A DNA stretch of 63,987 bases, the filler included, from Polymyxa betae A26-41 (taxonomy: Eukaryota > Protista > Endomyxa: Phytomyxea), in NCBI GenBank assembly GCA_003693705.1. It is 5 parts of 5 records of this genome, joined end to end, with 100 filler letters (N's around TTAATTAATTAA, not from the genome) between each part and the next. Parts side by side here need not be neighbours in the genome. Positions count along the whole stretch, not along the records: positions 47,688 to 52,066 come from RBZT01000938.1; 4 more parts are not named here. The stretch is one strand, 5' to 3'. The number at the start of each line of letters is the position of its first letter. The first letter of the stretch is position 1. Positions 2,783 through 52,166 of this stretch are shown one piece after another. A model generated the notes under the pieces. It was not told the origin of the DNA and did not search any database. It saw only the letters and a program-made list of their open reading frames with translations. Both the position numbers and the translations under genes were made by a program.

Positions 2783-5207
2783 CATATTCTACATCATCCA
2801 GCCCCTAACGGAAATCACGGGATCTTTCTACAACGGACCCAAACCGCTCACAAGACAAGACCTCTTTCAAAGTCGAATTTTCCAATGGCACTGATTTCAA
2901 ATATTGGAGTCAGAAGATGCTCCTTTTATTCAAGATTAAAGGATGGACAGGCATCGTAGCCCCACATGCCGACGAATCGCCGAACCTCTCAGAGGACGAA
3001 AAGACCAAGGACGAACTCGCTCAAGCTTTCATTTTACTCCATCTGTCCTTCGCAGCTGTCTGCGAAACCTCAACCGCACACGGAACATGGCATGAATTAT
3101 GTCATTTGTATCAACCAAAGTGCAACGCTTCTGTTCTACAGCACCTACAATCATTCTTCTCCCTAACGCAGGGTACTGACTCAGTTCAGCAGTACATCAC
3201 AAAGGTCAAAGACGCGGCAAACATGATCAGGGAAACGGCTTCTAAGGAGTTGCTAGTCTTCAATGACTCGCTCATTGCTGCAAAACTATTGATTGGAGCA
3301 TGTCCCAAGTATAAAAACGTGGTCAGCGCTATCGACGTACAATCACGGAATTGACGCTCCCCAAAATTTCCTCAATACTATTATGAGAAGAAAACCGGCA
3401 AGGCATCCAGAAAACGATCGAAGAACCGTGGACAGCACAATTGAACGAATTGAAATCTGCAAACCTTGCGCTTAAATCCCAGCTCAGCAAGTTTTACGTC
3501 TGAATCTAGAAAGAAAAAGGATTGCAGTTACCATCGAAGCCGGTCCCACTCCGATGAAGAATGCCTCCCCACCAACACCCTGAAATTCAAAGTCAATCAA
3601 ATACACAATCACCTAAACACTATCACCAGTCTCTCTCAGCGATCGTTACATCATCGAATCTGACTAGAAATGAGTGGATTATCGATTCCGGGTGTTCCCA
3701 TCACATGACATTTGACCAAACTCCATGTCACACCATCAATTACAATCTTGAAAGTAGAGGCATCCTGCTAGGCGATGACAGAGATCCCCATTTTCGGTCG
3801 CGGTAAAGAGCAGATACCAGTGCAAAATGGCCATCTACCTCTCGACGAAATTCTCATCGCCCCTGACCTCGGAAAGAACCTTCTCTCCATTGCCCAGTGC
3901 ACGAAAAATGGAATAAACTTCAGGTTCGAGGGGTCTACCTACAAAATATTCTCTTCCGAAAAGTGCCAACATCCTGCTGGAAACGTGCTACACACAGTCA
4001 CTTAAGGAAACGATAACATCTACCGCATTTGCGCTCGGCCAACGCACACGATATCAGCCAACTCTGGAAACAGGATACACAAGCATTCACAAGGCAGATA
4101 TGGCACGACAGGCTGGGACACATAAACGAGCGAGACCTGCAGCGCCTCATAAAACCGGGGACAACTAAAGCGGTATATATCCGAGAATCAAGCAATACAT
4201 CCTCCGATTTTAGCCCATGAGAAAGTTGCGTTATGCCGAAGATCGCAAGAGCCCCCTTTCCCATCCAGTCATCACAAAAGTGCATCACGCCTCTTTGAGA
4301 TTGTTCTCAGCGATATATTCGGGCCGTTTCCCGTTCCTTCTTTGGCCCGGTCCCGTTACTTCATCTCCTTTATCGACAAGAAAACTCGATTCGCTCACAT
4401 TTACTTCCTGAAACACAAATCTCAAGCTCTTGAGGCATTCATCAAGTTCGACTCAATCGCCCAGCGTAAAGTTGGACAGCGCATCCACAGGGTCGAAACA
4501 CTACACACAGACAATGGAGGCGAATACATCTCCAAACTGTTCCGGACTTATTGCGAGAAACACGGAATTAAACAAGAAACAACGGTCCCCTACACCCCAC
4601 AGCAAAATGGAATTGCCGAGCTGTTCAACAGAACAATTCAAGAAATCGGCAACAGCATTCGGCACAAATCAGGATTGGGCCCAGAATTCTGGGCTGAGGC
4701 TGTCAACACTGCCTGTACTTAACCAAACCTTAGCCACCTGCGAACATTCGGATGTAAGGCTTGGCACCAAATTTGAAAAGAACTCAGCACTGAACCTCAA
4801 AACCCCATTTGAAGCATTTTTCGGCGAACCGCCAAATCTTAGCCACCTGCGAACATTCGGATGTAAGGCTTGGCACCAAATTCCAAAAGAAAAATGGCGC
4901 AAATTGGACTTCCGAGCAGAACAAGGAATCTTCATAGGGTACAGCAACACTCAGCAAGGATATTGCATTTGGAATCCCACAAAAAACCAGATCACTGTGA
5001 GTCGGGACGTTGCGTTCGATGAATCCGAGTTTCCGGGTGAACACATCGCGGGAGTCAATTCGAGGGGTCGTGTTGATGTGGATCCTATACTTGACCCTCG
5101 ACGTGGAGCCATGTGACGACGACATGAATGGAGTAGCGGCCCACGGCATGCGCAACAACGAGAAGGTCCCATAATACCATCGCCCCGCAGTCTCTGTATA
5201 TAATCAA

Positions 5208-47687: not shown

Positions 47688-49460
47688 GTGCAGCAAATAG
47701 GTGAATTTAATCTTACTCTTTCGTTCACAGAACGTGATAAAATACCGCTCTCCTTTTATAGATCGTATAGGTAGGGGTCCGCATTCGTCAATATCAGTTC
47801 TCTCTAACAGTCCCATTGTTTCGGTTTACTATGCTTTGGGAATGGCAATCTCTTAGCCTTCCCGATGACACATGCTTCGCAGAAAGGTCAACTGTTCGAC
47901 AAATGCTCAACCAGTTTTTCAGTTGCCAACCTTCTATGCGATATTGTCTGGATGTCGTGGAAGTTTCGATGTCCAAGCCGCATATGCCAGAGCTGAAGGG
48001 TATCGTTGTTTGTGTCAGAATCGGACTTGGCTGAAGTATCTTCATTGAAAATTTGACATTACTAGGATCTCCGTCTTGGCTTCTAGATTTGGATGACATG
48101 AAGATTCAGATTTTGGTAAACTGATAGTCATATTATCTCAATTGAAACTTGGTCTGTGCTATCTTAACCATGGAATTCCAAGAATTACAGGAAAACATGG
48201 GGAGTTAATGATATTGAATGATGTAACTTAAGTCTGATCAGCAACAACAACAACAGTCAAAGGCGATGATTCTTGCAAGATTGTTAATTTCGTCCCATCT
48301 ATTGTTTCAGCTTTCAGCGCAGATAGCTTGTCAAGAATCGGAATGTTGAGAGCTAACATAGTTTTGCGGTCAGCACAGTTTGTAAACGATTTTGTATCAA
48401 CTAAAGCTCTTTATAACGGGACTGCAGTTAGTTTTAAATTTGACCCTGGTGGTAAAATAATTAGGAGTTGAGTCGGAATAATGAAATGTAAAATATCCTT
48501 TATAAGGAGCAGGCGTGGAGGCAGACAATTTCATCCCCGCCGAGGGCCTGGGAGTTCTTTTAGCGAGTTTCTGGCATTTAACTGCGATGTGTCCATCTTC
48601 ACCACAGTGAAGACATAAGCCGTTATCTATACGATGTTGACGTTCATCAGACGATAATGGCGTTCTGGGCTGTGATTGCGTGGAGAATGCTGCATCTAAT
48701 ACCATTGGATCAGACGATGGCTTAGATGTCGCCGGACTTCCGGTATTTGTAAATAAGGCGGTTCGATCGCCAAAAGAACGAAGTTCAAAATACGGTTGTC
48801 GCATTCAATAGCATCATTAATAGCAGATTCTAAAGTAGCCGGTTTCGACTTCGATAATAATAATCGTTTTACCTCGTTGTTCAGCCCACGATGAAACCAA
48901 TACATTTTGGCTGCGTCATTCCAATCTAAATCTGCAGCAATGAGACGAAATTCAGAAGCATAGGCACTGGCTGGTCGGCGGCCTTGCTGAAGGGTTTCTA
49001 TTCTTCGAGACGCCGTATTAATGCGATCCGGGTCGCCAAAGGCTTCCTCTAACAATTGTACAACAACGTTTGCATCGTTAAGTCGAATATCATTAGATTC
49101 CAGTAGAGGAGAGTACCAATGAAGAGCTGCCCCTTTCAATAAAGTTCCCAAGAGGGCTACTTTTACAGAATCTGCTGCATAACGTTGCGGCTGAAACTTC
49201 CAAATACGTTTAAGCTGATTCAGAATCCCTCGCGGTTTGCGACGATCTCCATCGAATGGGTCTGGAAGACGAACATTTGGTTCTAAGGATTGAGCTGCAG
49301 GTTGGTTAACAGTCGTTTGCTGCTGATGGTGCAGCAATTGACGTTGGAGCTGCTCGATCTGCGCACGCATGGCTTCAACCTGCGGTTAGAAATTATTTTG
49401 GAGTTCCTGAATATCTGAAAGGGACAGTGTTCGAGGTGGCATTTCTGGGCCCATAACCAA
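47688..49460 (-). mobile_element. Apparent hybrid LTR element: copia PBS, gypsy/sushi-type Gag and protease, copia GAG-pre-integrase and integrase start
   Basis: GGTTATGGGCCCAG then ATG; PDPFDGDR..KGAALHW..QGRRPASAYASEF..FHRGL..CLHCGEDGHIAVKC; ALVDT..PVILGIPWL; LWHMRLGH..FCEACVIGK..PFP; DECGP..GERYFITF. Confidence 0.75.
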
Positions 49461-49607
49461 TTAAAAGCTGAAGTTGAGCAGAACTTGTACAAAACGTTGA
49501 CTGAAACTAAATTGAGATGCTTGAGATAAACTAGAGACGTTCTAAGTTAGAACCAGAAACGAAAGTGTCTTTTATCGTCATCACAAACAGAATCATGATT
49601 GATAAAC

Positions 49608-50680
49608 TTATTGACTCAAGAAGAGCATGTAGAGTTGATTCCACCTAATTGAATCCAAAGCGTTCTGCTTCTCATAGTCCAGAATCATATTGTGAAGAAT
49701 AACACATGTCTTCATGACTGAATACATGCCATCACGACACCACAGCATACAAGGAGTCGTCAAAATATGGAATCGCGCTTTCAGCATTCCGAATGCTCTC
49801 TCGATATCCTTCCGCTTGCCCTCCTGCATAGATGAAAATTTCTTCTCCTTTAAGGTTTTCGGACTGCTGATTGTTTTGACGAAGCTAACAATCGGCGATC
49901 GGCCATTAATAACATCGTGCAGAAGAGTTGACCGATCCAGGACGTTGATGTCGTTCATCGAGCCTGGCATTCCAAAAAGGAGGTGCCAAAACCGGCAAGA
50001 ACGGTCAGCGACCGCCTCTAATACCACTGTTGACGTCCCTTCTTTGCCTGTGAACATTCCCGCCCAAGCAGAAGGGCAGTTTTTCCAGGTCCAATGCATG
50101 CAGTCGATGGAACCAATGCATCCAGGCAATCCTTGTCCATAGCTTTGATCTAGTAGTTTGTTTAGGTCTTGGATAGTTGGTTTACGAAGAGCATGATAGA
50201 TTGCCTCAATTGCAGCACAGAAGCGCATCATGGATTGTCGGGTCGTGATGACTTTGGACATTCGAAATTTATCATCTTGCTGTTCTGCCGAAACACCTGA
50301 AGCTAATATACGAACGACATTGCTAATCTTTTGGCGTGCACTGAGGCCTAATCTTTTACAGGCGTCCCGTTTCTGGATAAAATAATTGTCGTACTCCTGC
50401 ACTTTTTCAACGATCATGTCAAACAGGCCAATCGGAAGGCGAAACCGAGCTTTAAAATCTTCGGCATCATATATAAACTGGATTAGGACCCCAGTAATCC
50501 TCATGAAGAAGCTTATCGTAAAGGACCCGGCGACGATCTTTGGGTATTGCTTGCCTCTTCTTTGCTGGACGGATCATCCATAAGCTAGTTCCTGCATGAT
50601 CATCTCGAGATCGCTACAATTCTCGCTGTCAGATACATAATGATCAGGACGAAATTTCTCCCAGAATGCATTTAAATCCA
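49608..50680 (-). pseudogene. Pong/PIF transposase, internally deleted and C-terminally truncated
   Basis: FKARFRL, GLPGCIGSIDCMHW, RKDIERAFGML, CVILHNMI; lacks the LADG segment. Confidence 0.9.
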
Positions 50681-50787
50681 TGCTATCGTTCGATCGTCAG
50701 ATTTAACGATTTGCCGATTTTTGAATACCGGTGCGAAACCCGCGCGAAATCGTTAAGCGTAGTTTATTGATTTAATTATTAAAAATA

Positions 50788-51452
50788 CGCGTAATTCACA
50801 AAATACCCCAAATTTGAATCTTTATTCACGAAATACCCCAAATCCGCAGTTTTAAAAATTGCAGTGGCGCACTTTCGACTGGGCGCACGATTCTCAAATA
50901 CGATATAGATTTCGATTAATGCTTGAGACTTGGCAGAGCACACCAAGGAATCTTTACAGAATGGATGGTGAATGTTGCAGATTGGGAGCTTTCGCCTTAA
51001 CAGAGCCGTCTCTCCGCCTAACCCGGAATTAACATACGCCCGGAAGTTTACGTTCTTGAACAGATAAACTGATTACTGAACGACAAAAAGCTATATATTT
51101 TGGTCTGTTCACTTTTGTGGACGATTGCAGTTCATCCTAACGCATATCAATCGTAACTTCTGTCGGAAAGCTGTAATGCTCCCGAAGGGCGACTGCAGCT
51201 CTTGGAAAGGCTCACAGCTCGTGACAACTTCAAATGAAGCCATTACGTCTCTAAAAGACAAAGATACGCTAAATAATCGAAAATCGTGCGCCTACTCGAA
51301 AGTGCGCCACTGTAATTTTTAAAACTGCGGATTTGGGGTATTTCGTGAATAAAGATTCAAATTTGGGGTATTTTGTGAATTACGCGTTTTAAAAATGCGG
51401 TTTTGGGGTATTTCGCGAATAAAGATTCAGATTTGGGGTATTTTGTTACGCG
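50788..51452. mobile_element. Mutator-type MITE with long TIRs and a duplicated right end
   Basis: 9-bp TSD TTAAAAATA at 50779-50787 and 51453-51461; about 105-bp inverted repeat 50788-50892 vs 51282-51386. Confidence 0.88.
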
Positions 51453-51498
51453 TTAAAAATAACGATAACGATAATTGCGCCCGGTAAACATGCTCTAA

Positions 51499-52000
51499 AG
51501 CTAGCTCAGCATCAATTAATGCTTCTTCCTGTTTGATTTTGAGAAAACGCTGGGCTTCCTCAGAATCAGCTATACATCCAGCTTGGTTCACTATGAGTAA
51601 CTCGTATTCCACCATTTCACGTCCAGAAGCAGAAACTCGGGAATCTTGGATCCAGACTGCGCTCCTAAACGTTCGACGGTTTGTATTTGAAATGAAATGC
51701 GATGCGCTTACATCCACAGACAAGAAACCTTGATGCGTTGATACTGTCTTCCTAACACATATGTTTGCAAAACGCGACCAGAAACTATCCACGTGGGCGC
51801 AATCAATGTTTGATCGAAACGCTGAAGGCGAACTCAACAGTATATTTTCACCGATGTCGATGGATTCAACAAAATAATTGGGACGCCAAAGAATTGATTG
51901 AAGACAATGTTGGAACCCGATAATGTTAAAGATGTCATGGAGTCAGAAATTTTCACAGTTCAATGCTGAGCCAAGAATCTGCGACGCTGTGAACAAAATC
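51499..52000 (-). pseudogene. Probable convergent partner ORF of the Harbinger transposase at 43630-44845
   Basis: Abuts the right TAA of the 44880-51495 insertion; EEAQRFLKIKQEE coiled-coil C-terminus. Confidence 0.4.
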
Positions 52001-52166
52001 ATTTACCTTTTATTACGTTATTTCTTTTATATACCGATGGCGTTATTGTTAAGTTAGTTGGTTCCCNNNNNNNNNNNNNNNNNNNNNNNNNNNNNNNNNN
52101 NNNNNNNNNNTTAATTAATTAANNNNNNNNNNNNNNNNNNNNNNNNNNNNNNNNNNNNNNNNNNNN

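Follow-up and report, generated by a model that had tools for sequence, protein, structure and literature searches.

The stretch of DNA analysed here (the window, 63,987 nucleotides from the Polymyxa betae A26-41 assembly GCA_003693705.1) carries, on the minus strand of the piece at positions 47688-52066 (contig RBZT01000938.1), to which the analysis was confined, the 5' part of a long terminal repeat (LTR) retrotransposon in which a Ty3/gypsy-type Gag and protease are followed by a Ty1/copia-type integrase. The same arrangement was found elsewhere, and it is highly probable (roughly 0.88) that these elements represent a real Ty1/copia lineage that has exchanged its own gag-protease region, in all likelihood a single time, for the corresponding module of a chromodomain-bearing Ty3/gypsy element, the retrotransposon in the window (hereafter the window copy) being a degenerate member. 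The family occurs in soil protists, among them the clubroot parasite Plasmodiophora brassicae. The window copy itself is dead, a fossil; the family is the finding.

Domains of the window copy were read by six-frame translation and Pfam searches, with broken frames read piecewise or with X. Exact-protein look-ups with the window's own ORFs returned no match. A HMMER protein search with its Gag piece (positions 49385-48699) returned 4912 relatives, the best of which (P0001, 62% identity) lies on metagenome contig L001, where a protease open reading frame (ORF) comes after Gag and is succeeded by one that contains gag_pre-integrs, SH3_retrovirus and RVT_2 (5.6e-62), collinear with the window copy in every module. 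Further hybrid loci were reached through relatives of this copia ORF, the contigs of the best matches being examined. The hybrid set so obtained consists of the window copy, L001, L082, L083, L084, L085, L086 and L088, together with a 5'-truncated locus (L089) and a short locus (L024) which, judged by its Gag (55-71% identical to those of the hybrids), probably belongs with them; the contig of the latter is too short to reach the integrase. Outside the window, the hybrid order therefore recurs at 7 further loci and 1 short probable locus, in five other environmental assemblies and in the P. brassicae reference (e3 genome, GCA_001049375.1), which has at least two hybrid loci (L088 and L089). 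GC content was 42% for the window contig, 45-51% for the other hybrid contigs and 58% for P. brassicae. The window contig and the other hybrid contigs probably derive from soil protists other than P. brassicae, and no sign of human DNA was seen. Upstream of the truncated P. brassicae locus an ORF with the transposase-associated domain DUF4218 was observed (L089 5019-5678).

The closest Gag-protease relatives of the window copy (L001, L083, L082, L084, L085, L086 and L088) all run into a copia integrase and RVT_2. In L084, pol is a single ORF of 1126 amino acids (P0152) with RVP_2 at residues 33-157 (2.5e-13), gag_pre-integrs at 197-249 and then rve, SH3_retrovirus and RVT_2. The order protease-integrase-reverse transcriptase (RT) was also seen in L082, L085, L086 and L088, and a single ORF also spans the protease-integrase junction in L088 (5980-7062) and L089 (6035-8263). 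The hybrid proteases match RVP_2 (2.2e-9 in L082 and 1.5e-9 in L088), gag-asp_proteas and Peptidase_A2B in Pfam. A Ty3-type Gag lies upstream of the hybrid pol at every locus except the truncated L089, the degenerate L083 keeping the C-terminal part only. Identity between hybrid proteins ranges overall from 30 to 80%, and the Gag of L084 is ~30% identical to that of the window copy. A word-indexed protein search across the P0152 protease-integrase junction returned only P0152 itself. Given the open frame of P0152 and the recurrence of the junction across assemblies and in a reference genome, the junction is a family trait.

A one-off accident would instead leave the junction private to the window contig, produced either by deletion between nested or adjacent gypsy and copia elements or by a faulty assembler join. 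Such an origin would suit a degenerate copy truncated at a contig end; LTR elements often nest, and L084 itself apparently lies inside another copia RT. The same junction with the same spacing was nevertheless present at seven other loci, which come from separate samples, were put together by different assemblers and include one in a reference genome, in proteins only 30-80% identical to one another and often within one open frame, and an accident is hardly credible as an explanation. The initial annotation of the window, made from the sequence alone, had allowed for a single-copy junction with other copies of this Gag-protease continuing into gypsy RT; that refutation fails because the junction recurs and only distant relatives run into gypsy RT. 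Its preference for a swap of the capsid-protease module over nesting was supported by the seven other loci and by the copia features which flank the module and are common to an ordinary copia sister element, L087.

Intact members of the family are 4.5-5.3 kb long. At the 5' end a short LTR (about 83-190 nt) abuts a putative primer site for half of the initiator tRNA-Met (tRNAiMet), after which come a Ty3/PEG10-type Gag that includes a CCHC knuckle, and a frameshift cassette. The pol region, in the -1 frame, encodes an RVP_2 protease, a linker of ~40 amino acids, a copia integrase (HHCC, core and SH3) and RVT_2, and a GAGGGGG-type polypurine tract precedes the 3' LTR. A stretch of ~150 amino acids C-terminal to RVT_2 had no match in Pfam.

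The position of the hybrid pol was assessed with integrase-RT trees obtained by quick searches, one with all columns including the N-terminal ones and one restricted to the integrase-RT columns; all trees reported here are unrooted. With all columns, the hybrids formed one clade (support 100) whose sister was the ordinary copia element L087 (polyprotein P0156), inside 41 other copia elements. The same topology was obtained with the integrase-RT columns only, with supports of 91 (hybrids), 90, and 100 (the whole group inside copia). The sister element encodes a PF14223 Gag and a PF22936 protease in a single ORF of 1289 amino acids, and has in common with the hybrids a short LTR, an ..AATT end, a primer site (GGTTATGGGC) which encloses the start ATG, and a polypurine tract. 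When compared with PDB, residues 204-481 of P0152 matched the Ty1 integrase (7z0h, 3.8e-18). The hybrids therefore show the protease-integrase-RT order of copia elements, with RVT_2 and an integrase-RT grouping inside copia (the window copy contributing integrase pieces only), and lack both a copia-type Gag and the copia protease region (PF22936 Pol_BBD, DS/TG ... NLLS).

The Gag and protease gave a different result. A metagenome locus scan with a 6-sequence Gag alignment identified 80 further loci (L002-L081) with a Gag identity of 36-55%; none of the 80 had a copia pol, and all those long enough run into gypsy RT, integrase and chromodomain, which also follow in the relatives at or below 47% Gag identity to the window copy. 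One of the 80, the short locus L024, stood apart by its higher identity to the hybrids. Probes for gypsy RT and for gypsy integrase/chromodomain matched L002-L081 and nothing in the hybrids beyond the protease. The distant long Gag relatives (36-41%) are gypsy/chromovirus elements, since they carry RVP_2, RVT_1 and Chromo. At the profile level, hybrid Gag matched the distant gypsy Gag profile with a probability of 100 (E 1.5e-61, 230 columns), while its hhalign match to the copia Gag profile was confined to the zinc knuckle (21 columns); in PDB it matched the PEG10 capsid (7lga, 1.4e-13) and Ty3 Gag (6r22, 1.1e-6). The hybrids have the Ty3-type capsid Gag of gypsy elements without RVT_1, the protease-RT-RNase H-integrase order or a gypsy integrase. 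Their protease is up to 47% identical to those of the gypsy relatives, and in the protease tree hybrids and near gypsy relatives group apart from far gypsy elements (85/77), with the window copy beside L083 and L001 (100/98). Two of the gypsy relatives, L041 and L007, were assembled as units that repeat head to tail approximately every 5015-5021 nt, either because tandem elements have an LTR in common or because the assembly wrapped.

The limits of the gypsy-like segment could be placed on both sides. Its 5' breakpoint falls in the interval from primer site to gag and its 3' breakpoint within the linker, as residues 37-185 of P0152 align to gypsy proteases and those from ~205 onward to P0156. 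Hybrids and gypsy relatives alike have pol in the -1 frame. In both groups a slippery heptamer lies ~16-25 nt before the gag stop, followed by a 6-nt spacer and a hairpin whose loop opens with the stop; in the hybrids the heptamer is G_GGA_AAC (L024 and L088), G_GGA_AAT (L084 and L086) or the looser G_GAA_AAC (L001, L082 and L085), and the hairpin has 8-9 bp. In an alignment of 8 hybrids (A3), 95.3% of cells in the 8-bp stem were paired and 6 of the 8 pairs showed compensatory change, a level reached by none of 500 shuffles, with slid controls pairing at 36-66%. The cassette of the gypsy relatives (for example L016 1017-1078) consists of G_GRA_AAC, a 6-nt spacer and a covarying 10-bp hairpin with the gag stop in its loop; across 28 such relatives 86% of the stem was paired, with 33 compensatory cells, compared to 20-36% in slid controls. 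The gag stop is TGA in the hybrids and TAG or TAA in the gypsy relatives, and the copia sister L087 has a single gag-pol ORF. With heptamer, spacer, covarying hairpin and pol in the -1 frame, the intact relatives of the window copy have the layout of a predicted -1 frameshift signal. As the cassette is common to hybrids and gypsy relatives, gag, frameshift cassette and protease would have been transferred as one module.

Ancestral retention would dispense with a swap altogether: a copia lineage would have kept an old gypsy-like Gag-protease from which other copia elements diverged. Distant homology links the capsids, and likewise the retropepsins, of all LTR elements, and the unrooted Gag tree leaves room for such a history. 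Against it, the hybrids are nested in the pol trees, with a sister that has an ordinary copia Gag and 25-41 ordinary copia elements outside; their Gag is 40-47% and their protease up to 47% identical to those of present-day gypsy relatives, with which they also have the slippery site, spacer and stop-spanning hairpin in common; and outside the knuckle no likeness to the copia Gag of the sister was detectable. Retention is accordingly considered very improbable.

A third possibility is that hybrid sublineages each took a gypsy Gag-protease separately. Gag identity between hybrids falls to ~30% (L084 and the window copy), below that of the window copy to some gypsy relatives, and the placement of the hybrids among the near gypsy elements is not resolved in the protease tree, one origin being found in 41% of bootstrap trees. 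In the Gag tree, however, a single branch separates all 8 hybrids from the rest (93/91, 94% of bootstrap trees), all hybrids end gag with TGA, where gypsy relatives have TAG or TAA, and carry (C)GGTC in the loop, both junctions are at the same place in all of them, and their pol is monophyletic; several independent swaps are considered very unlikely. Separate trees of the modules, as called for by the initial annotation, agreed with a single replacement for Gag and placed integrase-RT inside copia, and only the protease tree failed to give a single origin.

The ends of the elements were compared among the hybrids. The LTRs start with A(A/G)TT(A/G)G.. right after the polypurine tract and end with ..(A/T)TT, with no gap before the primer site. 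This end abuts GGTTAT(G/A/C)GGCCCA in all hybrids, the 3' LTR being preceded by the GAGGGGG-type tract; besides the window copy, the primer motif, in which one base varies, stands next to the LTR in L001, L082, L084, L085, L086 and L088. The 14-nt motif was found in none of the 80 gypsy relatives, whose own primer site was not recognised by eye. The primer site is presumably a match to the initiator tRNA-Met sequence; no tRNA genes with which to match it were present in the examined loci. Priming by half of the initiator tRNA is described for Drosophila copia and Ty5 (PMC5371799). It was observed that the start codon of gag (L001 505-518) or of the whole polyprotein (L087 528-540) is an ATG inside the primer site, which is the complement of the CAT anticodon of the initiator tRNA; the window copy keeps it at 49452-49454, in frame with a second ATG.

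Both LTRs of L082 (135 nt) are 100% identical, as are those of L084 (at least 83 nt), while those of L088 are 98-100% identical and flanked by a perfect 5-bp target duplication, GAGGT, which fixes the LTR ends in this P. brassicae copy. Identical LTRs and a target duplication would be signs of recent, real transposition. The 5' LTR of L088 also contains a 22-nt internal duplication (4620-4660) missing from the 3' LTR. Positions 1-46 of L084, in its 5' flank, resemble DNA coding for another copia RT (..TISQQAYIERVL..), which points either to nesting or to a join made in assembly. The contigs of L085 and L087 have the same 126 nt at both ends and are circularly permuted and closed through the LTR, giving units of 4466 and 4360 nt; these end repeats are most likely an assembler artefact of the LTR repeats, the alternatives being tandem copies or one-LTR circles.

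Several points weigh against the replacement reading. The only intact complete copies seen, L082 and L084, come from metagenome assemblies and neither is surrounded by a clear target duplication, perhaps because of joins made in assembly or recombination between copies; the copy which has a duplication, L088, has frame breaks in pol. The initial annotation had looked for several copies with matching LTRs or target duplications and a continuous frame; some copies had identical LTRs, one had a target duplication, and the frame of P0152 ran on from RVP_2 to RVT_2. Hybrid monophyly on the integrase-RT columns stands at 91 (SH-aLRT, quick search), below the starred level, and one pol outgroup, P0178, entered without an assigned Gag type. 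The Gag tree is unrooted, and polarity therefore rests on the pol tree and on the family-level HMM evidence; relations inside the near group of the protease tree are not separated, and no single origin is resolved there. Transposition, frameshifting and particle formation are proposed from sequence features.

It is somewhat probable that the family is a stable and recently active chimera in Phytomyxea-like protists, in which a copia replication and integration core operates with a gypsy capsid, nucleocapsid, frameshift signal and protease. Its Gag-Pol would be made by -1 ribosomal frameshifting, the gypsy-derived Gag would form a Ty3-type particle, and the gypsy-derived retropepsin would cut a polyprotein that is otherwise copia. 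Minus-strand DNA would be primed by a cleaved tRNAiMet, like that of Drosophila copia and Ty5, and the copia integrase would insert the DNA with a 5-bp duplication. Two crossovers between a copia and a chromovirus-like element that shared a cell could have produced the chimera, one falling between primer site and gag and the other in the protease-integrase linker; they would have come about through template switching on co-packaged RNAs or through recombination at the DNA level.

The window copy is the 5' 1.86 kb of such an element, running on the minus strand from 49547 to the contig edge at 47688, where it is truncated; its 3' LTR would lie beyond the contig end. The motifs listed in the initial annotation for 47688-49460 were all present on this strand in six-frame translation. 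The 5' LTR, the ends of which had been regarded as not identifiable, could be delimited by comparison with relatives at 49459-49547 (89 nt, starting ACTTAGAAC and ending TTTTAATT). It is followed by the primer binding site at 49445-49458 (GGTTATGGGCCCAG), noted before as a half-tRNAiMet site and presumably pairing with the half of that tRNA which holds the anticodon stem-loop; by arithmetic, an exact 14-mer of this kind is expected by chance ~3e-5 times in 4.4 kb on both strands. The gag ATG lies inside it (49454-49452), and the downstream ATG of the initial annotation is the second in-frame one (49442-49440).

The broken gag extends over 48531-49454, as determined by translation and by tblastn against the L001 Gag, with the stop placed by alignment A3. 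Its gypsy type was confirmed: the Gag piece matched PF03732 Retrotrans_gag (5.9e-11), DUF4939/RTL-type (1.3e-7) and Ty3_capsid (1.5e-7), the capsid domain lying at 48879-49145, and there was no match to the copia Gag families PF14223, PF14227 and PF14244 in Pfam up to E=1. The CCHC zinc knuckle CLHCGEDGH..C (48568-48615) is a weak match to Pfam zf-CCHC (E 0.016) and lines up with those of L001 and further relatives. In tblastn comparisons the Gag is 64% identical to that of L001 over 49283-48741 and 58% over 48732-48556; identity to L024 is 71%. The remnant of the gag-pol -1 frameshift cassette occupies 48499-48560 (alignment A3), with hairpin arms at 48541-48534 and 48519-48512 that keep 7 of 8 pairs, a TGA gag stop (48533-48531) that opens the loop, and a slippery site decayed to AAAGAAC.

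The dead RVP_2-type retropepsin was placed at 48111-48407 by tblastn against the L001 protease. Its pieces had no Pfam match of their own, and its assignment as gypsy-type, also made in the initial annotation, was sustained by alignment to the proteases of relatives (37% over 100 amino acids for L001 and 49% for L083); the flap/C-terminal motif ILGIPWL lies at ~48185-48165. An unconserved linker containing the gypsy/copia junction follows at 48042-48110. The distance from ILGIPWL to the integrase motif LWHMRLGH is ~56 codons, a correction of the ~45 codons first estimated between protease and integrase, and since it is about the same in intact relatives, nothing was deleted at the junction. 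The N-terminus of a copia-type integrase (HHCC/gag_pre-integrs and the start of the catalytic core), with the motifs LWHMRLGH ... CEACVIGK and then DECGP..GERYFITF, occupies 47688-48019 and is cut by the contig end; as proposed previously it is of copia type, positions 48058-47891 matching PF13976 gag_pre-integrs at 1.4e-7. The integrase pieces are 82% identical to L083, 78% to L001 (tblastn range 52-78%) and 38-43% to ordinary copia elements. In its collinear modules, its closest identity to other hybrids throughout, its identical primer site and its retained hairpin, the window copy belongs with the hybrid lineage.

The degenerate state of the copy, also recognised at the outset, amounts to at least six premature in-frame stops (49388, 48230, 48161, 48140, 48044 and 47890) and at least five frame changes compared to intact relatives. 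In gag there is a premature TAA at 49388-49386, with frame changes near 48741-48732 and between 48556 and 48534. The protease has stops at 48230-48228, 48161-48159 and 48140-48138, and its active site reads D-T-K (48398-48390) and not D-S/T-G. One more stop (48044-48042) and a frame change fall in the linker, and the integrase is interrupted by a stop at 47890-47888 and shifts frame near 47825-47807.

On the minus strand of the piece, the retrotransposon is preceded in turn by an ORF of no family, a MITE-like repeat and a Harbinger/PIF-like remnant. The latter, a DDE transposase remnant at 49611-50573 with upstream fragments at 50577-50696 (Plant_tran 1.5e-62, DDE_Tnp_4), is an open stretch of 321 amino acids, compared to about 430-450 in relatives, and ends 60 nt upstream of the LTR. 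Its best relatives are metagenome proteins (59%), the named ones being from Fragilaria (53%), Aphanomyces (51%) and P. brassicae (47%). The MITE-like structure (50784-51446) has inverted arms of 117 nt, 94% complementary and 373 nt apart, which contain 30-nt and 70-nt subrepeats with AAATACCCCAAAT motifs. The remaining open stretch (171 amino acids, 51430-51942) had no match in Pfam.

Copia and gypsy are treated as separate families in which Gag, protease and pol co-evolve. To our knowledge no swap of the core particle module between LTR families has been reported, recombination being documented within families and for added genes (env). If the hybrid family is real, copia and gypsy can therefore exchange the capsid-protease module; such modules would be functionally portable across the Pseudoviridae/Metaviridae boundary, and RT-based and capsid-based classification would disagree for a whole clade. 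As a natural experiment, the family would also test how far the parts work together: a Ty3-type capsid and nucleocapsid would have to package and chaperone a copia RNA that is primed by a tRNA half, the gypsy retropepsin would have to process an integrase and RT of copia origin, and the Gag:Pol ratio of the copia enzymes would be set by a gypsy -1 frameshift cassette. The initial annotation knew of no described family of this kind, and no description of a copia/gypsy Gag-protease chimera was found in open-access full text, PMC2774666 and a P. brassicae pangenome preprint included (Repbase, Dfam and subscription journals were outside the scope). LTR elements dominate the repeat fraction of the P. 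brassicae genome (pangenome preprint), and the literature on this species uses 'Gypsy' and 'Copia' classes only. Annotation pipelines which label mixed-domain elements as 'nested' or 'mixture' would discard such families, and this one is in the published P. brassicae genome.

Compared to known systems, the hybrids resemble Ty1/copia elements in their protease-integrase-RT order, RVT_2, GAG-pre-integrase and SH3 integrase and 5-bp target duplication, in a primer site presumably complementary to the tRNAiMet anticodon stem-loop (as in Drosophila copia and yeast Ty5), and in short LTRs and an ATG inside the primer site, as in L087. They differ in that Gag has a Ty3/PEG10-type capsid and belongs to no copia Pfam type, the protease is of RVP_2 type (ILG..WL..NP.IDW) where that of copia is of Pol_BBD type, and gag and pol are split by a -1 cassette, whereas most copia elements have one ORF and Ty1 uses a +1 shift. 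With the chromodomain-bearing Ty3/gypsy elements (L002-L081) they have in common the Gag (36-47%) with its CCHC knuckle, the G_GRA_AAC cassette and the RVP_2 protease (up to 47%); unlike these, they have no RVT_1, gypsy integrase or chromodomain, place the integrase before RT, end gag with TGA, and have the primer site and LTR of their copia sister.

The Gmr1-like Ty3/gypsy elements of deuterostomes are similar in having a gypsy-type Gag and protease with the integrase before RT. In these elements, said to have been described by Goodwin and Poulter in 2002, integrase and RT are reportedly gypsy-type and merely rearranged, whereas those of the hybrids are copia-type by HMM, PDB match and tree; the hybrids are for this reason a cross-superfamily chimera and not a reordering. 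Known recombinants include Ty1/Ty2 hybrids, BARE-1 mosaics and the capture of env by gypsy, BEL and copia lineages, all of which, like the hybrids, reflect modular evolution by recombination between co-resident retroelements. Those cases involve close relatives or an added gene, whereas in the hybrids the core capsid-protease module would have crossed the copia/gypsy divide, and the lineage then diversified.

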